DNA from: Utricularia gibba
Lineage: Eukaryota; Plantae; Magnoliophyta
DNA length: 64,000 nt
Direction: 5' to 3'
Assembly (NCBI GenBank): GCA_002189035.1
Contig: NEEC01000027.1
Location: forward strand, 372,001 to 436,000
A program made the position numbers and the translations under genes. This document shows, piece after piece, positions 314 through 59,873 of this stretch. The notes beneath the pieces were generated by a model that did no database searches, had not been told where the DNA came from, and saw only the letters and a list, made by a program, of their open reading frames with translations. Numbering within the stretch: the stretch's first letter is position 1; every line of letters starts with the position of its first letter.

Positions 314-3300
314 TTAGATCTGTGTTTGCGCGACGGATCTCGGAACTTTCATACCGAATCCGTGTTTGACTCTCTCCACCCTGTTGATGGATATCAAAGA
401 TCTGTTACGATGCAGGATGGGATGATGAAATGAAGGGGAGGAATGAGTGAAGACTACTCACGTTGGTGCCAGTTTCCCAAGGCCATCCAGTGCTTCGCCA
501 GTTTGCTCATCAACAACCTCGCCATTGATCTCGATGAGATAGGACCTGTTTCTGGTGATTGGAAGCCCTCTGGTGGCAAGCAAGTCCAAGTCCTTTTGGT
601 GGAGTTCACGTCCATTCACATAAACTGCGGTATTTCCAGCAGCACAATCTTCTGGCATGGGGTGACTAAACTCTTCTATGTTTGGCTGCACAATGCGTAG
701 CTTGTTATAAAGATGAGTTGCAAAGACGGGAGTTGGTGAAGACGATGAACTAACCATGATGATGCCTAGACAGGGATGACCCATCACACCCCAGAACCCA
801 GCTTTAATGTCATACCTGGATAACAAGGAAGAAGAGCATGCTGAATGCATTCAGAGGATCATGTTTCTGCAGAGGTATGCGATGTTATTACCAGTATTCT
901 CCAGGTTGGATTGGCCCAGCAAGCTTTTCAGCTTTCTTAACGGCACGCTCAGGTACAGGATGCCCGTTTACAAAAACCTGCGCTTCACGAACCTCCCCGC
1001 TGTGATTCGACTTGTCTTTTTTGAAGCTCTTCTTCATGAGATTGGAGAGGAAAGAATCAACGCCTTTGCTAGATTTTGGTGGATGCTCCTTGTTTGTTTC
1101 CATGGAATCCTGAGACGCATAGCCATTTGAGAGCTCGTTGGATGGAACGTCAATCTCGGATGCCACTGCGTGATCTTCAGTGGACTTCCTTAGAGAAGTA
1201 CTCCTCTCAAGAGAAGAAACATCCTCCCTTCCTCTGCTTCTTGTCTCCTTGTCAAGACTGTTTTCGACAATGTTGCCGTGTCCATGATCGGATAACTCCC
1301 TGGGAGACAGATGGGTAACACGTAGCGAGGATAAACCATTGTCTGGGCTTGCCCCATCCTGAGATAAGCTTGAAGACGAAGAAAGATGATTCAAAGGCCC
1401 CCTCTCAAAGTCGCTAGAGTTTTCCTTCTTATATGCTTCTGCAAACTTGTGCTGAGAGTCATCACTGCACGTGTTTCTGTTTCCACAATAAAAGTCGTCA
1501 TTCCAGTAGCCACCATTTTCGTCCCCTGTCTCGATGGAAGCATCATCAATCTCGGTTGGTATTTGGCCACCATGAGCAAGTACCGGTGCAACAGAATCCT
1601 TGCTCCCAAACTCAAAAAAGATGATTGAAGAACAAGCCCCACATTTCACTTTCTGTGGCGTCTTCACTGTTGAAATGTGCTTCCTGGGAAGCTTCACCAA
1701 TTCAAAGCAATTATAACATGTTATAAACGGAGCGCCACCTGCAACTGGAAGGCTCACTTGCTTGTTTCCATGAGCAACAGCCATCTTTCTTGGATAATCA
1801 CTGGAATCCAGTTCATTAGAATTCCAGTGATGCGGTGGGCGTAATCTCGAATCCCCAGTATCAGAAGGCTGAGGACCACGAGTGGTGGGAAATGAACTGT
1901 GCTGGTTTCTTGCACTACAAAACTGTTGGTCAATCGAAGTTCTCTGTTGACTCTTACCACAGCAGCTCCAGCAGTGACATGTTTCCTGTCGAAACAAGCT
2001 CTCATGTCTGCGAGGCAAATATAGATCTTGCATATCCTCACCATAATAATGTGGAAAACGGTGATCATACGCTTGGTGCATGTGCTGACGATGATATGAA
2101 GGCCTCCAATTCCTCTCATTTCGAAACTGATCAGCAAATGGCGGCACCTCATGCACACATCCTCGTACAGCACATTCTTGAGTTCTTGAACCATAACTCT
2201 TGGTGCAAGAAGCAAACTTTGAGGAGGAATGGCTGAAACAATGAGGCCCCATCTCATCTGGAATGAGTGGCAGGCTGCTTATAGCCTGAGAGTTGCTCAA
2301 GCTCTGGGGATAAGAAGCATTGTGCCCCCTACAGCATCCAGGCGAGGCTGCCGCATCATTGGACCTGCTGAGCTGATCTCTCAATTCATCAAGCCTCCTG
2401 AGAAGCTCCATCCGGTCGATTTCTGGATTTTCTGGTCTGACGGCTCCTGGGTTATAACCATGATGACACCTTGCTCTCTCACTGGGCATCCCATCTTCAT
2501 GACAAACAAAATCTTTGATCCTCGCTTGGCCAGAAGCCACCCTGGTTTGCATTCGAGATGGGCCAGACTCAAAATGCAGATCATCCCAACTGTCTGCAGC
2601 AGGTCCCAGTTTCATGGAATCCATAGAAACTCTAACATCTCTACCATTTGCATCAAAGTATGCATATTCAGGCCTATCTGCATTCAAGTCACAGTTTTTA
2701 GAAGGCTTCTTATTACGCACAGAATCTTGGTGGTGCTCCCTATCAGAAATTCCTCGAAAGTTTACTCCCCCTTCTTGTCCTGTCCCCTTTCTATAAGAAT
2801 CGGCTGCTCTTGCTGCAGTTTCATGTTGCGAAGTGCATACCGTTTCTTCACCCCGACCCGTTACAACTCCATTGACAGCAGCTTCTTTCTCACCATCAAT
2901 GAGAACCTCAGAAGCCCTGACAATGGTATCCTTCTCAATGTTCCGTCCAACGTTTGCATCATCAAGTATCTTGGAATGCCCGTTTTCAAGAATCCCCTTT
3001 CCTTTAGCTGCAAAACATAATTAGTTGCAGCATACGAAAGCTCAGACAAGACATCTATCACACGACAAAATGTCTGGATCAATAATAAAAAATAGAATAA
3101 TAATGATGTCATTGATCAGATAACTTGGTATACCAAAACAAAAGAATAAGAATCATTTTTGTTATGGGCTAAGCATATGAAACCAACAAGATGACCCAAT
3201 AGAAGAAGCTCCACACTGATCCATAATGGAGATATGCAAAAGATACCTCTGAGAACTGCACCACAGCCACCGCACTTGTAGATAGAAAAATCTGGGAGCT

Positions 3301-21083: not shown

Positions 21084-24000
21084 TCATGACTGTTTGCTTA
21101 ACTCATTGCCTTCCGTTATGCTCATCTCCACTCCAGCTGCAGAACTAAAGCATGCGTCGTTGGCCGCAACTGAAGACGCTGAATCCAGCCCGGAACCAGC
21201 TTGAATCTCTTTGAACATCGCCAATACTTGAATCATGGTCGGACGCTTCCAAGGTCGATCATCTAAGCAAGAAATAGCTACTTTCAAGTGCTGCAGAAGT
21301 TCTATCTCCAGGGTGAGATCCTCCTTCAACAGCATTGAGTCGAACACATCACTTATCCTTGTTTTCGCGTGCTGTTTCACCCACCCCACGAGATTATTGT
21401 CTCCGAAATCAGCTGAATCCGTTGGTCGTCTACCCGTGAGGAGCTCCAGCAAAACCACTCCGTAACTGTACACATCGCCTTTCGTCGTACACCTGAAGCT
21501 CTGATAGTACTCCGGGGGAACATAACCAGGCGTTCCAGCCAATGTACTTACACTCAGATGAGTATCCATTGCGCTCATCAGTCTAGCCATTCCGAAATCC
21601 GAGACCCTTGCCTCCAAGTTCTCATCAAGGAGGACATTGCTGGACTTCATGTCGCGGTGAATGATATGCGGAATGCAATTGTGATGAAGAAAGGCTAATC
21701 CTCTTGCTGCTCCAACGGCAATCTTCCTTCTTGCTGCCCAGTTGAGCTTTATCCCCATTCTTTTCCGATCGTGGAGTACGTCTTCCAGGCTCCCATATTT
21801 CATGTATTCGTAGACCAGAAGCCGCTCCTCCCCCACCTTGCAGTAGCCCAACAGGGAGACGAGGTTCCTGTGCTTGATCTTTCCTATTGTTTCCATCTCA
21901 GCAGTGAACTCTCTGTCACCCTGGCTGCTCACATGTATCAATTTCTTGATCGCCACGATGTTCCCATCTTTCAATCGCGCTTTATACACGTCCCCGAAGC
22001 CACCTGATCCGATGAGAGTATCATTGTGGAAGCCATTCGTTGCTTCAAGAAGATCAGCAAAAGTGAGCTTCCGCAGAGGCTTCTCAAAGGTTGCCAGATT
22101 GATTGACAACGCCTCACGGGCACTGAGCTTCCATAAGCTTTGTGCCGTGGCCGAATTCGAATGGTTCTCCATGTAAGCCTCAAGTGCAGCTTCCTTTTTC
22201 TTCGTCCGCTTCTTTGTCTCCATGGCAAAAATAACCAGACCAAATATGCAAAACAGCGCAAACAGTAAGCCAATCGCTACGCTTCCTGCAAGAGACGCCT
22301 CCCTCCTCTTAGACTTGGAGTGCATGGCCGTCCCTGCACCAGGGAGCTTCGTGCACGAAGGCAGGGGGTAGCCACACAGCCCTGAATTGTTAAAGAACCG
22401 ATAATCAGGGAACGTGTCGAATGGAACCGAATCCGGGATTGGCCCAGAGAGGTTGTTGTTTGACAGATCAATGTCTCCAAGCAATGTAAGGCCTTTCAGT
22501 GACTGTGGAATCGATCCATTCAACCTGTTGTAAGACAGATCAAGAATGGCAACATTCTTCAAGCCTCCGAGATCCTGTGGAATAGGACCAGACAGATCAT
22601 TGTGCCCGAGATTCAGTATTGACAAGTAGTACATCGAGCCAAGCTCCTTGGGGATGCTTCCAACCAAGCTGTTGTACGAAAGATCGAGAAATATCATGGA
22701 ACCATTGTGATTGAATGTCAGCTGAGTGATTCCTCTGTAAACTCTTGTGAAGTTACAGGGATGCCTTGTTGAAATTCTGTCCAAGCTTTCCTGACGAATC
22801 CCTCCAAACTCCAGCAAATTCCCTGCTCCATGGCAGTGTTTGCTACCATCGTTCCGGATATAAACGTAGCTCTTACCAGTGAGGAAGGCAGCAGCAATGT
22901 TGGATTGCTTGAAAAGAGCAGGCGGCATAGAGCCATTCAAGTGGTTTGAGTTCAAGTCCAGCCAAATCAAGCTCTGGCAATCCCCTAGCTCTCCTGGAAT
23001 GTTCCCTGATAAAGAGTTGTTCCCCAGATTCAAGATAGCCAAATTAGAGAGGCTTCCAAGGGACGAAGGAACCTCCCCCGTCAAGAAGTTGTTCGACAAC
23101 GAAATCCAATTCAGCTTACTGCAGTTGCTCAAACTAGCGGGTATCGATCCAGTCAAGTCATTGAAATCAAGAATGAGATTCTCCAAGCTCTGCAGGTTCA
23201 TGAACTCCCACGGGATTTCACCCGAGAGTTGATTCAGCCAGATGATCAAATCCTTCAATCTTGATAAAGAACCCAGACTGGAAGGAATGGCTCCAGACAA
23301 GTAATTCAAACTTAGATCAAGAGATTCCAAATTCGAACAGTTACTCAGTGCCTCGGGCACACGGCCAGTAAACATGTTGTTTTGTACATACAGCTTTTTC
23401 AAGGCGTTTCCAGAGTTAGCGCAAAGCCCAGCGGGAATCTGCCCAGATAGGGCATTGGAACTCACATCTAGAGTCTCCAGTTTCACCATTTTTGAGAAGG
23501 AACCAGGAAGGGCACCCACGAAGTTGTTGAAAGACAAGACTAGGTTTTTCAAATTGCTCAATTTCAGGAGCGGGTTAATGGGCAACTCGCCGGAAAAATT
23601 GTTGGCTGAAATATCCAGAAACTCAAGTGCTGTGCAAGCGGCGAGAGTTTCCGGCACGGTGCTTGTGAAATTGTTGAAGGACAAATCCAACTCGACGAGG
23701 GTTGTGCATAAATCAAGAAGACTTTGGGGGAAAACACCTTGGAAGTCATTTTCCCGGAGATAAAGATACTGAATAGCCCCCCCGGGGAGAGCTGGGACGT
23801 CCGTCAGATGGTTCTTTGTGAGATTGAGAAAACTCAGCTTCGAACAGGCAGAAAGAGCGTCGCCAACAACACCGTAAAATTTGTTTGCAGACAAGTCCAG
23901 GTGTTGGAGATTGGGGCAGCTAAGGAACGATGGAAACTCTGAGGAAAAATTGTTGAGCGAAAGATCCAAGTAGTTGATATTCTTCAAATTGAACGGTGGC

Positions 24001-24677
24001 AAGTTTCCGGCGACCTCGTTGCCCCGCAGGGAAAGATACTGCAATTCCGGAAACTCCGACAGCAGCCACGCAGCGACGTTGTCACCGGAGATTGTATTGT
24101 AAGAAAGATCCAGAGTCTGTAGAGAAGATAACCCAGGGCTTCCAATAGTCTTCTCAACAACAGGGCCCAAAGCATTGTGCGACAGGTTGAGAAAGGCCAA
24201 ACCAGAGCAAACCCCAAGTGCCGAAACGTCAGTGACAGGTCCAGAAACGTCATTCCCTGCTAGATCTAACAAATTCAAGGAACTGCTACAGGGAAATCTT
24301 GATGCAGAAGAGATTACACCAGAGATTCCAGAGTTTTTCAACACAAGGGTCTCCAAGTTCCTCAGCGGAAGAAGAAAGCTCGCTACTTTAGAGAAGTCTG
24401 CGTTGAGGGGAAGATTAGAGAGGTCGATAGATGACACTCTAGAGTTCTTGCAAGAAACGCCAAAAAAATTGCAGGGAGACGCCCCCGGTTTCCAACTGGA
24501 GAAAAATCCGGTTGAGATGAGAGAATTCTTGAAAGAAATGAGCTGCTGGGACTCTCTCAAAGGGCCGTTTGCCGCCGCAAACGAACCATAGGAGACGAAG
24601 AAGAGGATAAAGACCAACAGTCGCATAGAGCAGCCACAATAGATTCCGAGTGACGCAAACAACCTCTTCTCCTTCAT
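21084..24677 (-). CDS. BRI1: Brassinosteroid receptor LRR receptor kinase BRI1, single exon, 1197 aa
   Basis: LRR ectodomain with island domain ([25 protein letters not shown]...[11 protein letters not shown]...[10 protein letters not shown]), a TM helix, [26 protein letters not shown], and an intact kinase ([15 protein letters not shown]). Confidence 0.97.
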
Positions 24678-48549: not shown

Positions 48550-51500
48550 TCACTTCCGGGGAGAAGATGGTGCGTGGGAGTCGGGACGCCATTCCGATTT
48601 CTGGGCGCTGAGAATGCCTTCCTGATTCTGTGTAATGCTTAAGAAGACTTCCCAGTGAAGAGATTTCAAAAGCTCCTCGAGATCGTTTATCGCGCCGGAT
48701 TCATCTCGCGCGATGAGTTTCCCCCCGGGGCGGACAATTCTGTCGACTTCCGCCATTACTGCCCGGAGGTTGCACCTGCAGAAGAAGCAAGGGAAAAAGA
48801 AAAGAGTTGGTGAATTGGAATAAAATGGGGCGAAACAGCTACAGCTGCTACAACCTTTTCTGCAGCTTGGAGAAAAGATGGTCTGCGTGTAGAAGATCGT
48901 AGGTTCTGGGGTATGTGCTGAAGGATTCGCACCAGTCGTGGTAAATCCCAAAGAGCCCACGTTCGTAGATGATGGGAAGTGTATCCGGCGAGTCGACGTT
49001 CACCACATTCATAACCCAGATCTTGAGATCTTTCATCGCTGCAGCAAACCTGCAGAGAAGTTTTAGTGAGTAGCTTCGATTGTGATGAGTCTGTTATTTG
49101 AGGGCCTTAGTTCAGCTTACCCTCCATACACAGCTCTCATGTCCATGGCATTTCTCACATTTTTCCAGTTGATCCCTAATCCATTCATGTAAGATTTGCT
49201 AACCACATGTTTCCAGTGTTTGTAATCTGATGCAAAGTCATCAGGTGCTGGTTTCCCATATATTCCTTTCTGCGTTTTACTCAGCCAAAATGGCGGAGTG
49301 TGTAGCCTTTCCGGCCACTCCTCTGGCCACTGAGATCCCCTTTTGTTTTCTTGCATCGGCACCTTGTGCATACATGCCTGCAGAGGAACATACCTGAAGC
49401 AACAACAAACTGCAAGTCATCGCAATGCCACAATGAAGTAAACGGGAGTAGAGGGGAAGTCACCAAGCAGCATCAGGATCATCATCTTCTTTACACATTG
49501 GGGGTTGCTTTCGTTTCCGCTTGTTGTAGCAGTCGTTTGAATCGGGTTTCTGATAAATCGCAGCGCCGATGGAGTTCAGTTTGTCCTTCTTGATGGTCAC
49601 AAGCTCCCAACACATTGCCACCGTGAGATTCGACATTTCTACAAGAAAAGTTAACGAACTCTGAAGACAAGAGCTCTTCAGTGTAAAATGATAATCAAGA
49701 AACTGTCACCTTTCCAAATCTTCACATCTTCTTCAAGGTTCTGATAAACGGGAGTTGCTGACCAAATGAAGTACCCTCCGGGCCTGAGTACTCTGTTTAA
49801 CTCTAGAAGTAGCCTTCCTCCTTCACCATGTGTAAGAAAAATCAGAAGAAGCCAGTGAATTGTAAGAAACGTTACTTGAAAAAGCCGAGAGGGGTATTGG
49901 GAGAACCATCAGCGTGCCAGGGAACACGGCAACGAGCGCAGTGTACTGCTTCAAAAACTCCGCTAGGAAACGGCAGCCTCTGCGTGCCCATCACAGCTGA
50001 TATGGCGGGAATTCCCCTTTCCAGAGCGAATTGAACCTGAGCTTCATGCTCGTCTTTTGGCGCAAAAGACAGGGTGATTACATCTCTATCGAAGAGGTAG
50101 CCACCAAAACTAGCGACTCCACACCCCACATCAAGTACCACTCTGGTGTGCTTTCCCCATGCTATGTCTGGAAGTGCCTGAGTAACACATTCACCAGATA
50201 AGAAAAAAAGTATCCATTTTTGTACAGTTGTGGAGTTCTTCACGGTTTACCTGTTGAATGAAGTCAATGTAATGAAGGGCTCCATGGATGAACTGAGTTC
50301 CACCGCCGGGAAAAGTGAGGTACTCCCCTGAAACCTTCACCCAATTCTGGTGACCTTTTACTTCAGCCAGCAATGTATGTGGGACGTTACTGTACCATAT
50401 CTGATATGACGACGACGCAAACATAAAGGCGCAACCTTTGCAGTAGCGATACCGCAGGCATTATTCACACAGTTTTAAAATATGTTACCTGATCTCTGCT
50501 TTTTGGCCAGGGAACCGGCTTCTTATAGCCTGCCGGCAAAGGAACAAGGCAAGTAGGAGGATTCTTAGGACAATGGCGTTCGCGATGCTCGTAATGCATT
50601 CGGCTTTGGAGTTTCGCGATATCTTTCTCGTTGTCCAGACATGGGATGAAATCTGCACCCGCAGTTTCATTACAGAGCAGCCACGAATAGCCCGTGTTTT
50701 TTGTCACTGTCTCTTGCGGCGCTGCCATTCGCCGCTCCTTCTCGTTCTCAGACTGGTGGGCTTGAGTGTTCCAAGTCTTCTTCGATTCCACTGATTCTTT
50801 GGGTATCTCTGCATTTGGAAATGCAGAGGCTTCCTCGTTCGACTCTTTTTTTGGTGTTTGTTCAGTTTCTGCAAGATTCCCTTTTCTCCTTTTCTCGTCC
50901 ACTGAATCCTGAGTGATTTCTTGTGGATCTGTTTGTTGGATGGGTTCTTCTTTCTCTTGGGAACCGATGTTTTCTCCAGTTGAATCCGTGAGGGCATCAT
51001 CGTGCTGGATTTGTTCAGCGCTTGTTGCTCCATGAGGGTCCTCACGGATCTGCTCATTCTCTTTCTTTTGCTGGATTTCGATCCTTTTTTGCTGATCTTC
51101 ATCGGAAATCAAATGCTCTGATTCTGAATTGTCGGAGCCTTTTTCTACCCCCACTTCTTGTTCTTTCTCTTGTTTCTTCTGGTCTACCTCCTGTTCCTGA
51201 CTAACTGTACTTTCCTCAGCGGTCTGTGTTTCGAGAGCCAATTGTTTCTCGTGTTCATCCCCAGATTCGGCAGCTCCTTGCAATTTCTCGGTCGCCGCGT
51301 CGGATTCGAGGGCGCCGTTCCCCTGATCTAGCTTCTCCTCCGTCGTAACCACATTGTCCCGAGACTCCGCCACCTCATTCTGCTTCTCCGGCGGCTTTTC
51401 TTGCTTCTCCACCTTCTCAATTGAAGCTTCTCCGCCCAAGGACGCACCGGACGCCTCATCTTTCTCGGCGTCAGTGTCCGCAGATTTCGTGGTCCCGCCG

Positions 51501-51745
51501 TGAAGCTCCTCTAGCGCATCTTCGTGAACCGGGTGGGGTTCTGTCATGGAGCTGGCGCCCCCAGAATCCATCATCTCCGGAGATTCCGTGGCCGTCCGAT
51601 AGGGCAACTGCAGGGGAGCAAAGGGGTTGGAGGTCAGGAGCCAAACCACCAAACCCGAGAGTGCCAGGAATATCATCATAATGGTCGTCGCCGAGAGAGT
51701 GCCCCCGGCGCCGGTCCGCCTGCTGCGAGATTTTCCGGTGGCCAT
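48550..51745 (-). CDS. Probable pectin methyltransferase (DUF248/PMT, PMT27-like), type II Golgi membrane protein, 8 exons
   Basis: N-terminal anchor, long acidic stem, [42 protein letters not shown] and [15 protein letters not shown]. Frame is intact. Confidence 0.93.
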
Positions 51746-52311
51746 CACGAACTCCGTTGGTGGAAAGACAAACAAGGAGACAAGAGCAATGGAAGAAGGC
51801 CGGCATCCATAGTCTGGCCCAGATCCACCACCGTAGGAGAAGGCGTCCGTTACGCCCTTTGCATGCAAAAATTTAAAATCGCCTACCTCCTCACTCACTC
51901 CGTACCCCCCTCCCTGATTACGTTGCACCACGTGGTCAAAGTCAAACAACCATCTCCATATTGGGCTTATCCCGGGCCCACCGGACCTTCCAGTTTGGAA
52001 AAAAAGGGACACCTGTGGAATGACTAAGAAGCCCGTACCTCATTACGGCCCAAGAAAGGCTACATAATCGGGAATTTATAATTAATTATTGACTCGTTTT
52101 GTTTAATTTTTCATAGTTTTGCGATACGCAGTCATGCACATTACTTAGTTTTAATTTTATTAGATTCTATGATATTAATTATTGATTTTTAATATAAATA
52201 ATTAATAATATTCTTGTGGCGAATTTCCATGTTACCCCCCTGCTCACCTTCCTATTCACCTGCAAACCTCACACATGCTGGATCGCTCGTTCGTACGGAA
52301 GAGACGGGGCG

Positions 52312-54362
52312 TCAGGTGTCGAGGATTCGCTTGCTTCGGGCGTAGCAATGTATCCCCGCGTAGATGGCGATGGCTATCACTCCACCCATGATGTTCGCCT
52401 ACACAGAATATGGCACCAGGTGATCAAATGGGAGGAGGAGGAGGAGGAGGAATGATCTGAAAGATGATGAACTGCTGTGTGTTCTCACTCACCCATTTAA
52501 ACAGGTTCCCGTGCCCACTGTTCCATGGGTAAGGGATCATCATTCCAAGAATCGCAGCCATTAAGTTGTAGACGGATAGGGCGAAATGCCCAGAGTTGAG
52601 CAGCAGATCCACCTGCATGCCAAACAACATACGGATTGAGGGTGCGGTGCAGGTGCTCTCCGCTCCCACAGATAGTGAATCAGAGGCTTCACCTTGATCA
52701 GCTGGTTTCGGAGATTATCGAGCTGATGGGAAATGGTCAGTCCACCAAACAGACATGATGTGAGATTGGGATCATGATGCCTGGGAAGGAAATGTTTCAA
52801 GCATTTGATTCACCTGGATGTTGAGGTAGTCTTCCGTGCTTTCGATGTATTCATGCAGCTGTCCGATGCGAGGAGAGATCAGAGCCAAGTTTTTAAGGTT
52901 AAAAAGATCCCCTTCCGTGTGCCAGTGCTACATACCATGGACAATTTGTCGAATGTTTCATCCATATTGGAATAGTAGGCCTGCAAGAAAATGTTCATCA
53001 TGCATGGCGCTTCACCGACCATAATGTTGTATTTCTGAAATTCGTACCTCAAGTAGCATTTCCAATTCTAAAACTTCGTTGTCTTTCTCATGATCTTTTG
53101 CACTACCGGCTTCACGAATCTCGTTACCTGAGGTGGATGATGATGGGGTGCGGAGACCAGTGGCTGCTGCATCTGAGATGTTGTCCATCGTTGCTGCTGG
53201 TCTAGCAAGCTTTCTGGACAAGTAGAGGTTAACCATATCCTCTTCATCGTCCAAAAGCTTTTCCAGCTCATCTTGCACCTTGGTAAAACCAAGCAAACGC
53301 AATTGTGATTCAACTTTTCACTTAAAGCGTGGAGAAAGTGATGATGATCAATCAACCACCTTGTGGACTCGAGCAGTCAGTCTCGTCATTTGGCTCTTCA
53401 GCTTTCGCACATGCTCTAAATTCCTGGCGCTGATCTTCATGAGAACCAAAGGCAGTACAACTCAGAAATCAAAGAAGCAAGGGCACTGGTAGATTGCTCC
53501 TACGAGGGGATGATTCATCACCTTGGAGGTGAGAAGGTCCAGCGCGGGGTAAACGTCGTTCTCCAATTCAGTTGTGCGCGCTGAAAGATAGCTGCATATG
53601 GCTTCCAACACTGTATCAAGGACATGGATCTCGAAAGGATGATCTGCAAAACCTATCGCTATAAAGGTCTGAGCAATCGACGTGCTAAACAGGAAAAGAG
53701 GTTAAAAATCACCATCTTCCTCGAAGTCCTGGTTTGGTGAAGATGCCTTGCTCGTGGAAACTAATCGCCTCCTTAGCTCTGCAACCACAGGCGCTATACT
53801 TTCATCAGGCTGATTCCGTATCAAAACCTAACCAGTAAAGATTTTCAGTATGAGAAGCTTGCTGTTATGTGATGACAGGAGGCAATCTCTGAGAAATGAA
53901 TTTCAATTTCCAGGACACTCACCTCCTCAGCCGTGATGATCGCCTTGATATGCTACAAAAAGCAGAACACACAAGCAGCACAAGAGAAGGACTCAAGGAA
54001 GTTGGTTATCAAGAATACAAGTCAAAACTGAAAATCATAGAAGATGGAGTCTGAACTTCTAAACCGGAACTAGAAGATGAAGAGCATTCACTTACTTCTA
54101 AATTGAGAACAATAGCCTTTTCACGGCCGAATATGGCAGCAGGGTAACCCAAGATCGGGTCGATAATGCGTAGATCACGAGCGTTGATCTGAGTACGCTG
54201 CATGACTTCATATTTGTCGATGTTCACAGTAGATTCCTGGCCACAAGAATCCACCAAAATCCAGCTCCCTAAACCAGTCGTCTTCTTCTCCGTCTCTGCA
54301 CTACCAGCGATCACCGGAGACTCAGCTGGACGCACGGTTGCCCCTCCGCGGTTTCTCATCAT
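52312..54362 (-). CDS. MRS2: MRS2/MGT (CorA-family) magnesium transporter homolog, 11 exons, signature GMN replaced by GMM
   Basis: Spliced: ARDLRIIDP...[10 protein letters not shown]|[10 protein letters not shown]|...[10 protein letters not shown]|[21 protein letters not shown]|...ELEMLLE|AY...|EDYLNIQ|LDNLRNQLI|...[11 protein letters not shown]...|...RILDT*. All junctions are GT-AG and in frame. Confidence 0.9.
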
Positions 54363-55448
54363 CAACAAAAACATTACTTTACAACAGAAATCAACCACTT
54401 TCCTGATAAAGAAATCCTGGCCATGTAGCTGAAATGTTGTATGTATCATCATCTTGCAAATTGCTTCTAGAAAAGAACATAGGGCATTTCTCTGCGAAGT
54501 CGAAGATGTAATTATCCAACCCAAAGAACACTGCTATCAACCAAGGAAATGATTACAGCAAACCCATAGTATCAGCACATGCTCGTACAATGAATCCGTG
54601 CAGTCATAGACCCGGGGAAGCTGTAGCTAGTTGACAGCTCCCCCCCTCTCAACCTCCTCACTGCTGTTTTTTTATGTATATTCAAGTATACAAGCACGTT
54701 GACTAAGCCTAAGAATGCTTATTCCCTCAATTCATATTATACTTCAACAAACATGGTGGGGGCCTCTTTTCCCTTCGAGTAGAAAGAAAAAGATTCCATC
54801 TTTTCATCAGACTACAACCCTGTACAGGAGGGCAGCTCCTTCCAGTTAGTTGAAAAACATTTTCGATCATGTCCAGCACCTGCAAAACATGCAAATCACA
54901 TCAACTTCAGATATATATATTTTTTTTATTCCAGACATGTCCAGAGCGAATGCCACAACAAGATTCCAAAAGACATGATATGATCAGTTTACGGAAATTG
55001 GGAAGGGGATATCATCACCTCCCACGTCAAAAGACATGAACCTAGAAAGTGTGCATAGCTTCCATAAGTTGACTAGAAACAGGAAAAATCAAAATCACCG
55101 TTTCATAAATAATGTAATTGCCTGCCATAAGGTACTGGACTGAAATTTACGACACCTGATTTACATTACTCGAAATACATGATCTCGGTGGTATTTTCGC
55201 ATGCTTTGTGTTTTGATAAATTTACAACAAAGTAAGAGAATAAGCACACCCCGTTTCTACCCAAGTCAACTGACAGCATAAGACAAATTTAATTAATATC
55301 TACGTCCCAACTTGATGCAGGAAGAGTAATGGCACACGGCATAGAGTTATGCCTGGCTTTTTAAACATATAATGTTCTTTTTTCCGTAAATCATTACCTG
55401 CAGGTTTTACACAGAAGCTGAAGAAAAAGTGGCCCGGATTCAGTAGCC

Positions 55449-58400
55449 TCAGTATTCCCCTGAGTTGAACTTGTTCCAAGCTTCCTGAAACACAAGGAAC
55501 ACATGATGCGAATGACGCATGCGCATATGATGGTTGAAAAATAGATCAAGAAGCCCGGGCGATGAACATACTTTTAGAAGATCAAAAACCTTCTCACAAA
55601 TATACTTCTGCTGTACTGTCGCACCCCGTTGCTGTAACTTGTCAGGATGGACACAAAGAGTGGCTTTTCTGTAGGCCTTTTTTACGGCCGCAGGAGTGAC
55701 AACTTCAGTTAACGGAATTGGATGCCAACCGCTTTCAGGCCCAAGAATCTGCAAACAATCATCCAACACCGTAAGGCATATGAGATGTTGGAGAGTCAGC
55801 GAATTAGAAACATACGTATTGCAGAGTCGATAGCAATGCCCGGAGGTTTCCTTCTTTTCCATTCGACCATCTCTTGACCTCAGCATCTAACCCTACTGCA
55901 ACTTTCTGTAGAAGCGTTAAGCATGAGATATGTGCGATCGTGAACAGTACATAAAATTTGATAAAAGAACATGTGGGCCTACACTCCTCTCCTCCTTCTC
56001 TGTTTGGACAAGGAGATCACGCCTGTTTTTCTCAGCCAATGCATTCGCCTGACAAAACTAATCTATTACAGCAGTTGATGAATAATCATAAGAAATGACA
56101 ACACGAGCAAAATACTGTGCATACCACTCTCTCTTCTGTTCTTCGGTATCTCTCCAGCCGAGCTTTACATCGCTGAAATGATTCACCATTAGCTCCTACA
56201 GTGAACTAACATCTCAGTACCATAGACCGCATAAGTCATGAAAATAAGTTCCAAGTGCTACATCGAACTCTTCTAAAGTAATGATGTAGGGAGATGAAGT
56301 TAAATTCCCTACAAATCAATAATCACATGCAGAGTACATCATATGGAACTACATACAACTCCTGTATGATGCCAGATAACTAACCGTCATGCTCAGAAGA
56401 AAATCCCCAGGCGCCAGCGCTGTGGAAGTGCAGGTCCTATAAGGTGACAAGAACAGGATGAAAAAAACATCTAAAATGTCAGTCAATGAGCACTAGAAGA
56501 CAGGCGAAGCAAACTTACGGATGGCAAAGAGCTATATCCGGAATCCCCACATTTGACAGAAGCAGAACGCCTATCAGCGAAAGATTTATCCATATGACCC
56601 TTGGAATCTGAAGCGTTTTCAGAAAATGATCTTTCTGAAACCCATTGCCAAGCCCCATTATTTGCTCTCTCCACAGCCACATGGTCAGGCTTGGCTCTGG
56701 CCTCTACAGATGATTTATCTACTCCCACTCGACCAGTTGAGGATCTGTCTTTCATTTCAGCATTAGCCCTTTCCAATGCCACCCTTTCAAGAGATTCGGA
56801 ATATGGTCTTGCACGAGCTTCCAGAGCTGCCATACTGACTCCCATCCGATCCTTTTCCCTTTCCCTCTGGCGTTCCATGTCTTCTTCCATCTTCCTCTTA
56901 TAATCACTTATCAACTCTGACTCACCAACTACTGTTGCTACTGAATCAAAGCCCCCTGCTAGGACACTATTTCTAATATTTTTGTGTTTTCTTTCACTGC
57001 TTTGGTCCATAGCAATTGTAGTTAGAATTTCTGCGGCATTGCTGTTCTCAGGCACGGGTGGAGCATTGTAAACATTCTTTCCACTTTCTTGATACTCCTT
57101 CATCACTACATGTGGAGCAGGACTCTTTCTGATATCAATACTGCTAGTAAGTTTGTCACCCTTCATCTCTCGGCAATCATTGTCTTTGGGGGAAAAAATC
57201 TTCTGCTGCTCAGTAATAATGCTTGTTGAGAATGACTGGTCCTTCAGAATATTTGAATCCACCACCATACTACCACAAACACTTATATGCCGTTCCAGCA
57301 AAAAATTGGATTCTAAATTTTTTCTTGCTATCCGGTAAGATTCATAATTTTGTGGTTTGCCATCCTTTTGTAAGGACACCATATACTCCTTAGCCATAAC
57401 ATCTTGCACCATATTCAAATCCGTATTTGCTTCTTGTGTGGGAGTAGCGATAGATTTGTGAACTTCTATCCCCTGTAAAGAGTTTTGAATTGCTCCAGTT
57501 TCCTCTAGATTTTGTACTCGAAAATCTGCACTTAACTTCAAAGTTTCTTTTGCCTCAAAAAACTCTGTTTGGTCACCCTTTGATTTCCAGGGATCTCCAG
57601 TATGATCAATAAACTCCGCGTTTTCAAGAACTGCTCTCTGTGTTTCATACTTTGCTGCCTGTTCAAGGGTCTCGCCAATATCCGACTCACTTTCTTTCTT
57701 CTCACTGGAGGGAGCAAGCCTCCCCATTGAGTGGCCACGTGGTGCTACTTCTGTCCCGCTGTTTTCGTGTCCCATGGTTATATGTGGCATATGCTGACCA
57801 TAATCAAGGGTTGAAGTGTTCCCTTCCAGCTTATTATGCTGGATTTGTTTGTTTCTGGCTTCCTTCAAAGAAACGACTCCTTCGGCTTGCTCATTTTTTC
57901 GAAGTTCGTCACCTCTATCTACTTTAAAAGACTTCCTTTTCTCTACAACTCTAGGTTCTATCTGACATTCTTCCCTTTGAAGATGTGTGTCACTTATCCA
58001 ACTGATTAATCCTTCCCAAACATTAACTCCCAAATCCTTGTCAACCCCTGAAAGCGCCCCAACTGCTTCATCCCCTGACATTTCCACCTTCACACTTTTT
58101 CCAAATGTATGGGATTTTCCTCGAGTAAGCTCCTTCGGAATTTCTTCACTGGACGGTTGGTCTTGCTTTAGGTTCCGGAACCCATTCTCACCAATGGAAC
58201 AAGTGCTTGGGGTCCTCTTCGGTGGATTATATCCGGGCAGATTCCTTTCAGCATTGTATCTTGGAGTTTCCTTCGTCAACTTAAAATCCTTATACTCTTG
58301 CCTTCCTCCAAATTCCCAAGCCTCTTCTCCCTTCTGATGCAGGTAAGCATCCTCAGGGTGAGATGCATCATAATCCCCAACAGCATTGGCCGGATGCTTC

Positions 58401-59873
58401 CACACCTTCTTCTCAGTGACCTCAAAATATTCTTCCATTTCCCGCCATGTAGCATAATTTGTGGAGTTCTGAATATTTTGCTTATGGTAGCACATGGCTT
58501 CCGCAGTGCACTTCCTCAAACTGTGCTCATCTTCAGCAAATGGCCTGGATACAACGCCTTCTGGTGCACGTGAATGAAGAAACTCTTCGTCCTCAAAAAA
58601 GTCAACTATGGCAGGACTGATGCTTTTCAGACGCGTTTGAACATTGCAAGCCACTAAGTCCTTCCCTTCACGTGAGCCTAGTGTGTCAGCATGCACCACT
58701 TTCACAAACTTATTCTCTCTTTTCTTACCAGATTCGTCTACTTCAACATCCAAAAATACCAGGTCATCGCCACCACTCATGTCAATGGCAGCATCAGATG
58801 TTTTCCTTTGTGATCTGTGCATCATGCTCTCACATTTCGTAACCGTAAACCCAGGTGGAGCTCTTGAAGGGGGAGGCACCCTTGAAGGCTTAGTTTGAAG
58901 AGAGATATCAGTTAGAGTAAAAAATGGTTGCTTCGTCATAGAATTAGGATTTCCTAGCTTCTCCCATGATTGGGAATCAATTTCCCATCTCTCAGAACCG
59001 GAGCAATGCATGTGATTATGCTTTAGTCTTCCAGAGGGTTCACTTTCACGGCATCTAATACCAGGAGCCGTAGACAGTGGGCAAGGCTGGTATTCCTCGG
59101 TGGAAGAAATTGAACCAGTGTTATAAGCCAAACCATATCCAGGATCATGTATATTAGCAATATGACTAGTGTTGCTGCAAACCAACTCCTTGTGTCTCCC
59201 GCTGGGGCTGCTCTGAGATGCGCTTAACTGCACAGCTGCTCTACCTGTTAGCTGACAAGGATCACCATTTGGTAACCTATTACTCTTACCTGATCTACCG
59301 AGTGGATCTAGTTCTTCAGAAATCGACCATCTTTGCACAGAAGTCCTATTAAAGGATAAGGTATTGTTAATCCCTAAAACCAAAATGACACCAAGAAAAA
59401 AAAAAACCAAGATGATGAAACATAAATACTCATGCCACTCCACATTGCGTCAAGTGATGAGTGCAGACCCATCTGAAACTCTTCCAACTCCTATGCACAA
59501 TGAAGAAGCCCATCGGAAAAGTAAAAACAAAAAAAGAATGGACTTACGATGAGCCTTTGTAGTGGAAGACATCTTGGAACGAAGCCGTAAAAGCAGAACC
59601 TCCGACTTTCCCAAAAACCTCGGCGTAGTCGGGATTGGGGCCCCGTGCGTCGAAATGGAGCCCCGAATCCCCTGCCAGAACCGGAATGTGAAGCACAGGA
59701 ATAGAAGAAGAACGCGAGGCGTGAAAACCACCAAAGATCTCGGAATAGTCCTCGCGGCGGGGGGCCTGTACCGGAATGCTGATCTTTTTGCGACTACCGA
59801 AAACGTCGTCGTAATGAGACTTCTGAGAGTTCGCAGAAACGCTCCTCTTCGTAACCGACCGAGAGACCTCCAT
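55449..59873 (-). CDS. Auxilin-like protein (AUL1-like) with C-terminal J domain, 8 exons
   Basis: N-terminal YDDVFG...[16 protein letters not shown] motif, large exon 59330-56519, and C-terminal [13 protein letters not shown]|ILG...[12 protein letters not shown]...EAWNKFN. Confidence 0.9.

Follow-up and report, generated by a model that had tools for sequence, protein, structure and literature searches.

The window analysed here, a stretch of 64,000 nucleotides from Utricularia gibba (assembly GCA_002189035.1, contig NEEC01000027.1), carries on its minus strand, from position 54362 to 52312, an MRS2-family gene of 11 exons. As reconstructed by a script run on the window, its coding sequence of 1167 nt remains in frame throughout and comprises 388 codons followed by TGA. 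All ten introns exhibit GT..AG ends, and the 20 splice-site dinucleotides are thus all intact. The Gly-x-Asn signature of the 2-TM-GxN (CorA/Mrs2/Alr1) transporters, the Asn of which gives this superfamily its name, is lost in the gene, which reads Gly-Met-Met in its place. Codons 343-347 are GGA ATG ATG ATC CCT (52546-52532), placing G343, M344 and M345 at 52546-52538 (M345 at 52540-52538) where the family has GMN. The gene, referred to below as the GMM gene, is a real and rare natural variant of the selectivity filter. No second copy of it was found within the 64,000-nt window.

The layout of the gene, with all coordinates on the minus strand, follows that of the family. Exon 1 (54362-54096) encodes 89 residues at the start of the N-terminal regulatory domain; its ATG at 54362 agrees with the starts of the homologues, and it holds the RDLR motif (R62-D63-L64-R65, 54179-54168), which is kept. 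Exons 2 to 5 lie at 53952-53923, 53827-53713, 53643-53522 and 53434-53360, and the family motif PFEFRALE has drifted to PFEIHVLD (F143I, R144H, A145V and E147D; 53629-53615). Exon 6 (53278-53048) encodes DMVNLYL in place of DMADLYL (A219V and D220N), followed by a linker of variable sequence and the first part of the stalk helix. It is followed by exons 7 (52980-52936) and 8 (52858-52814), and by exon 9 (52722-52693), which carries the stalk and inner-gate residues D312, R315, N316 and I319, all of them kept. The first transmembrane helix (TM1), the filter and the loop are encoded by exon 10 (52612-52493), with a hydrophobic stretch at about residues 323-349. The second helix (TM2, hydrophobic at about 356-381), a basic C-terminal tail and the TGA are encoded by exon 11 (52398-52312). 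The two hydrophobic stretches align with TM1 and TM2 of the homologues, such that two C-terminal helices flank the filter loop. The original prediction, made from the letters alone, had described the GMM filter encoded by GGA ATG ATG, its distance of two base changes from AAY, the 11 in-frame exons with GT-AG ends, and the drift of EFRALE to EIHVLD and of DMADLYL to DMVNLYL. The filter was recovered at 52546-52538, with the same letters in four public runs; the two base changes were borne out by codon comparison, the exon structure by the script and by spliced contigs, and both drifted motifs were found in the alignment. The replacement of Thr by His at residue 329 (ACN to CAY) likewise involves two base changes.

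A search of public data yielded 14 runs with this sequence in five studies, all coded as one organism, and four runs were compared over positions 52000-54700. The run evidence consists of Logan contigs rather than raw reads, and speaks for presence and structure rather than for expression level or tissue. The best DNA run (X1) is a possible source of the assembly and was excluded as support. The evidence thus derives from three studies in all, namely a DNA run of a separate study (X3) and the RNA-like runs X5 (study P3), X6 and X9 (both of study P4). With 19 differences from the window over 2241 bases, X3 is another accession or haplotype. At positions 52538-52546 no alternative letter occurs in the contigs of X3, X5, X6 or X9; at 52538-52540, where the original prediction had proposed to look in the reads for AAT or AAC, the contigs of these four runs give ATG. 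All ten introns are removed at the modelled junctions (CT..AC on the plus strand) in the contigs of X5, X6 and X9, and one X9 contig of 1289 nt spans exon 1 to exon 11. The introns are retained in the DNA run X3, and the spliced form therefore represents RNA and not a retrocopy. Three runs show transcription of the GMM gene together with its correct splicing.

Several additional observations concern the transcripts. RNA-like contigs of low depth keep intron 1 (53987-54124; X5, depth 5.3 versus about 26) or intron 7 (52830-52965; X6, depth 3.6 versus about 9-12); they represent either pre-mRNA or minor forms with a retained intron. Intron 10 contains a (GGA)n / (TCC)n microsatellite (52424-52459), at which the X3 DNA contigs break and which is probably polymorphic in length. 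The frame of exon 1 is open for 54 codons 5' of the ATG (54363-54524) and includes in-frame ATGs close to 54450. The RNA-like contigs extend to 54505 (X9), and an X5 contig of 4352 nt continues beyond 54700 by about 3.7 kb in the upstream direction, toward a stop-free open reading frame (ORF) on the same strand (56486-59443, minus, 986 aa) that lies just upstream of the GMM gene and for which Pfam gives no match at E 0.001. The upstream extension could be a long 5' untranslated region, could stem from transcription running on out of the upstream gene, or could belong to an isoform with a longer N-terminus.

Homologues were sought exon by exon. Exon 1 served as the query of an exhaustive phmmer search, which returned 421 homologues, mostly exon-1 fragments, the best of them 57% identical; an ORF search with the same exon gave 13 matches, all at most 62% identical, with no close orthologue fragment among them. 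The stop-free ORF around exon 10, used as a homologue query, gave no candidate of 45-142 aa, and exon 10 compared with PDB sequences produced only chance matches to ENPP1/2 (E 0.4). When the exons were scanned separately against Pfam, the MRS2-like family PF22099 scored 18.2 bits for exon 1 and 12.2 bits for exon 6; every exon fell under the whole-protein cut-off of 27, a shortfall that is expected for single exons. The closest full-length protein, P0057 from Ulmus minor, is 54% identical over 369 residues and carries both PF22099 and PF01544 (CorA). The search with P0057 listed 120 angiosperm proteins, named MRS2-2 or MRS2-I by their sources, all of them canonical orthologues with the Pfam CorA and MRS2-like domains; these matches form the set of 120 clade members on which all conservation counts below are based.

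In a tree of 29 rows obtained by a quick search, which included 17 of the 120 clade members, the GMM protein joins the angiosperm MRS2-2/MRS2-I clade (20 rows, SH-aLRT 98), although its exact place inside the clade is uncertain, given the long branch. Arabidopsis MRS2-2 is also known as MGT9, a Mg2+ transporter required for pollen development. The GMM protein is 54-55% identical to clade members over about 370 residues, and shares with them the order of N-terminal regulatory domain, stalk helix and two TM helices, as well as the RDLR, EMLLEAY and TEDY.NIQLDN.RNQLI blocks, the IPY.W loop and the basic tail. It differs from them in the filter, which in the clade is GMN or GVN, and in T329H, S336N, S326N, E322D and H314L, which line or flank the pore. 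Its end branch is also extreme, with 1.63 changes per column versus a median of 0.14 (about 12-fold). Conservation among the 120 clade members reaches 97% or more at 224 positions; the GMM protein departs from the clade at 65 of these, and ordinary members at 0-3.

Whether the whole genome evolves fast can be roughly checked in the same window. The ORF at 21087-24677 (minus, 1197 aa) consists of a single exon and encodes leucine-rich repeats, the island domain of brassinosteroid receptors and a kinase domain. Over its entire length it matches Arabidopsis BRI1, with 853 bits (E 2e-255) for the ectodomain and 622 bits (E 1.5e-185) over the 326-aa kinase domain, and it is a BRI1 orthologue of ordinary conservation. 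Since this neighbour is ordinarily conserved, the extreme rate is specific to the GMM gene and not genome-wide. The strong divergence noted in the original prediction is thus upheld, as a property of this gene.

The variety of filters among the relatives was surveyed in an alignment of 137 full-length homologues together with the GMM gene model. The canonical GMNIP appears in 114 and GVNIP in 10, nine of the latter in the MRS2-2/MRS2-I clade and the tenth in a non-clade representative (P0123). GMSIK and GVSIP appear once each, in P0075 (L003, GCA_015680905.1, end branch 0.41) and in P0096 (L002, GCA_019321725.1, end branch 1.65). GMMIP is confined to the GMM gene and occurs in none of the 137 homologues. 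The nine GVNIP proteins of the clade (P0165, P0167, P0174, P0207, P0212, P0261, P0263, P0264 and P0269, among 120) are otherwise canonical, and their host plants include Castanea, Populus, Alnus, Durio, Tetracentron and Spatholobus. GVN, as it appears in this alignment, is a normal variant of the clade and no indication of divergence. The natural variants known to the original prediction (GIN, GVN and AMN) all keep the Asn; natural plant variants that lose it do exist, namely the GMS of P0075 and the GVS of P0096, both from other plants, which are independent losses of the filter Asn in annotated MRS2-2-clade genes. Like the GMM gene, these two belong to the same clade, have long branches and have lost the Asn. 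Their Ser, however, remains small and polar and offers an oxygen as ligand, whereas the GMM ring would be hydrophobic and sulphur-bearing, and both keep E322, S326, T329 and S336, while the GMM gene is also altered below the filter. The GMM gene is thus, on the aligned residues, the most remodelled of the three copies that lose the Asn. Filter variants have been described in other plants, with AMN in OsMRS2-4, OsMRS2-5 and TaMRS2-1 to -3 and GIN in OsMRS2-8 (PMC4613352, PMC13048270). These, too, are natural non-GMN paralogues of MRS2, but they keep the Asn that the GMM gene loses. In the literature library that was searched, no paper joined MRS2, GMN and GMM, or a GMM motif and magnesium, and none joined Utricularia gibba and a magnesium transporter.

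The changes were placed on the pore by means of an ungapped alignment of P0057 with human MRS2, from the stalk helix through the GMN, and of the spacing in CtMrs2, in which pore-lining residues are numbered in steps of seven, counted from the Gly of the filter (PMC11919701). The inner part of the pore is largely preserved: D410, R413 and N414 of CtMrs2 correspond to D312, R315 and N316, all kept, while R406 and M417 correspond to N308 and I319, which are the clade's own residues and are kept as well. D420 corresponds to D322, where the clade has Glu in 120 of 120 members (E322D). Further out, the P1 residue T427 corresponds to H329 (CAT, 52588-52586), at a position that is Thr in all 120 members, and the P2 residue T434 to N336 (AAC, 52567-52565), which is Ser in 118 of 120. 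N326 (AAC, 52597-52595) replaces a Ser found in 117 of the 120, and its pore-facing orientation is suggested by the i+4/i+7 spacing. At the filter itself G441 corresponds to G343, which is kept, and N443 to M345, where all 120 members have Asn; G343, M344, I346, P347, Y348 and W350 are all preserved in the GMM protein. The outer stripe of the pore has changed from E-S-T-S-S-G-G/N in the clade to D-N-H-S-N-A-G/M. Of the features of eukaryotic Mrs2, the protein therefore retains RDLR, a eukaryote-specific motif that holds the open state (PMC11919701), and the stalk and inner-gate residues, and lacks the polar rings P1 and P2. As judged from its sequence, it is a member of the Mrs2 family by descent, yet it fails the GxN signature and both polar rings. 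The absence of acidic loop residues (site U) was considered as a further peculiarity and rejected, as 19 of the 120 ordinary clade members are also without any.

The closest relative comes from Genlisea aurea and consists of an exon-1 fragment, P0021. Among 150 representatives, it alone shares the derived exon-1 states RIIDP and GYP; it lies on a contig of 1139 bases (GCA_000441915.1) which stops in intron 1. A tree built on exon 1 (155 rows) places P0021 as sister to the GMM gene (SH-aLRT 83, common stem 0.41), with asterid sequences as the next neighbours. This placement suggests that the fast-evolving copy may be older than the split between Utricularia and Genlisea. Relative to the P0021 fragment, exon 1 exhibits a non-synonymous divergence (dN) of 0.32 and a synonymous divergence (dS) of about 1.06, corresponding to an omega of about 0.30.

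Three explanations compete with a functional, remodelled protein. A sequencing, assembly or annotation error, which would mean that the codon is really AAY or that the exon comes from a different copy, has a negligible probability and is refuted at the level of the public contigs: X3 and the three RNA-like runs all give ATG ATG, the window is without a second copy, and individual spliced contigs run from the filter exon into the adjacent exons. The next alternative is decay, whereby a duplicate under relaxed selection, still transcribed, would be an early pseudogene, an option that the original prediction had left open. The very long end branch, the replacement of 29% of the clade-invariant positions and the loss of the signature residue of the family all fit such a course. 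The polymorphism within the species, by contrast, is that of a constrained gene. X3 differs from the window by five synonymous, one non-synonymous (N47S) and ten intronic differences (262, 902 and 884 sites, respectively), giving a ratio of non-synonymous to synonymous polymorphism (pN/pS) of about 0.06 (binomial P = 0.003, or 0.008 once the M2I difference of X5 is included; Fisher P = 0.0016 for non-synonymous versus silent and intronic sites). In neutral simulations (n = 2000), in which the coding sequence mutated freely until 45% of the residues differed, no sequence remained free of stops (0/2000, with a mean of eight stops), whereas the GMM gene keeps 388 codons open and all of its splice sites intact. 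The 65 replacements at clade-invariant sites are conservative, with a mean BLOSUM62 score of +0.45 against -0.57 +/- 0.12 under neutrality; 80% of them score at least 0, and N345M and T329H (both -2) are among the few radical ones. The introns are spliced correctly in three runs, and the derived exon-1 states are common to the Genlisea relative. The GMM gene is under purifying selection, and a pseudogene is unlikely, because the gene is transcribed and spliced, its pN/pS is low, a frame of this kind was never open in the neutral simulations and its replacements are conservative; decay as a whole retains only a slight probability.

The third alternative is an ordinary Mg2+ channel, in which the ring of Gly carbonyls and the other pore residues suffice and the change of Asn to Met is tolerated. 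It agrees with the expression and constraint of the gene and with the preservation of G343, M344, I346, P347, Y348 and W350 together with the gate and regulatory residues; GVN, moreover, is a common and harmless variant (9/120 clade members), and Asn has become Ser in two other plants. The Asn itself, however, is found in all 120 clade members. In Mrs2 structures it lines sites S and U, and filter mutants lose function (PMC11919701; PMC3629940), in agreement with CorA/Mrs2 mutagenesis, where changes of GMN generally abolish transport (PMC4613352; PMC11919701). Met, moreover, would be unable to coordinate hydrated Mg2+ as an amide does, and three further pore residues are altered alongside it. 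An ordinary channel is thus a doubtful explanation, if a less remote one than decay.

The reading favoured here, with a probability of roughly 65%, is that the GMM gene is a live, fast-evolving member of the MRS2-2/MRS2-I group (AtMRS2-2 type), the product of which would either form a pore of altered preference or serve as a subunit of mixed pentamers. Selection retains the frame, the splicing, the fold-type residues and the gating parts (RDLR, D312/R315/N316 and the hydrophobic gate I319), while the outer half of the pore has been rebuilt, with a ring of Met for the ring of Asn (N345M) and with bulkier, nitrogen-bearing residues in the two polar rings below the filter (T329H and S336N, and also S326N). 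As the protein is kept by selection and its gate and sensor parts are intact, it would be expected still to assemble into a CorA-type pentamer and to be gated by its N-terminal domain. A canonical Mg2+-selective homopentamer would not be expected, because five Met side chains could hardly replace the Asn ring; the canonical Mg2+ filter site, built from the Gly carbonyl together with the side chain of Asn, would presumably not form. Under one mode, the protein would provide a pore of changed preference or conductance, Met and His being typical ligands of softer metals, and the His ring could confer a dependence on pH. Under the other, it would act as a subunit that alters pentamers mixed with canonical MRS2 paralogues. 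Within this reading, a homomer of altered preference may claim a little over a third of the weight, a modulatory subunit slightly under a third and a weak Mg2+ pore about a fifth, the remainder being left to unknown roles.

A bolder version of the favoured reading, which is speculative and on balance improbable, holds that the retuned pore would carry or sense a softer metal (Zn2+, Ni2+, Co2+, Cu or Cd) or would open and close with pH via the His ring, and would have been kept since before the split of Utricularia and Genlisea, within a radiation of non-GMN paralogues in a carnivore that uses the minerals of its prey.

Several points weigh against the favoured reading. The ion preference, assembly and location of the GMM protein are all inferred. 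The loss of transport in GMN mutants fits a non-conducting subunit and a new selectivity equally well. The polymorphism counts are small, amounting to seven coding differences derived from contigs and not from raw reads. The concentration of changes in the pore stripe (5/8 versus a background of 29%, P about 0.05) is a post hoc test and is not used as proof. The orthology of P0021 is based on 67 columns and two long branches, such that long-branch attraction is possible, while the Genlisea contig is without the filter exon and GMM is known from one species only.

Known systems provide partial parallels for both modes of the favoured reading. The CTR copper transporters have methionine rings at the mouth of a trimeric pore, and the predicted Met ring of the GMM protein would lie at a similar place, the entrance to an oligomeric cation pore. 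This is a resemblance only, since the trimeric fold is unrelated and there is no evidence for copper transport by the GMM gene. For the second mode, a partner role for the GMM protein would be an analogy with yeast Lpe10, which differs from it in retaining GMN. Lpe10 modulates Mrs2 (Sponder et al. 2010, cited in PMC9276622), a precedent for a paralogue whose part is to adjust a CorA-type channel and not to work on its own, and the CorA-type family has been described as forming homo- or hetero-pentamers (PMC6972854). Within the 2-TM-GxN family, ZntB transports Zn2+ and has GIN or GVN as its filter (PMC4613352, PMC6972854), a precedent for small filter changes that go with another metal preference, although it is bacterial and distant and keeps the Asn.

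The interest of the GMM gene lies in the position of the residue that it has lost. Structures put the Asn where the pore is narrowest, a point which sets selectivity, and laboratory mutants at this position are mostly dead. A natural copy without the Asn, expressed and kept by selection, represents a ready-made test of the need for the Asn ring, and could show whether the fold can be retuned or can serve as a silent or modulatory subunit.

Additional features were recognized elsewhere in the window. The neighbour downstream of the GMM gene (50468-52012, minus) contains the start of a Methyltransf_29 domain and is a putative methyltransferase of the pectin type, while an ORF at 891-2720 (minus) contains an EDR4 zinc-ribbon domain.

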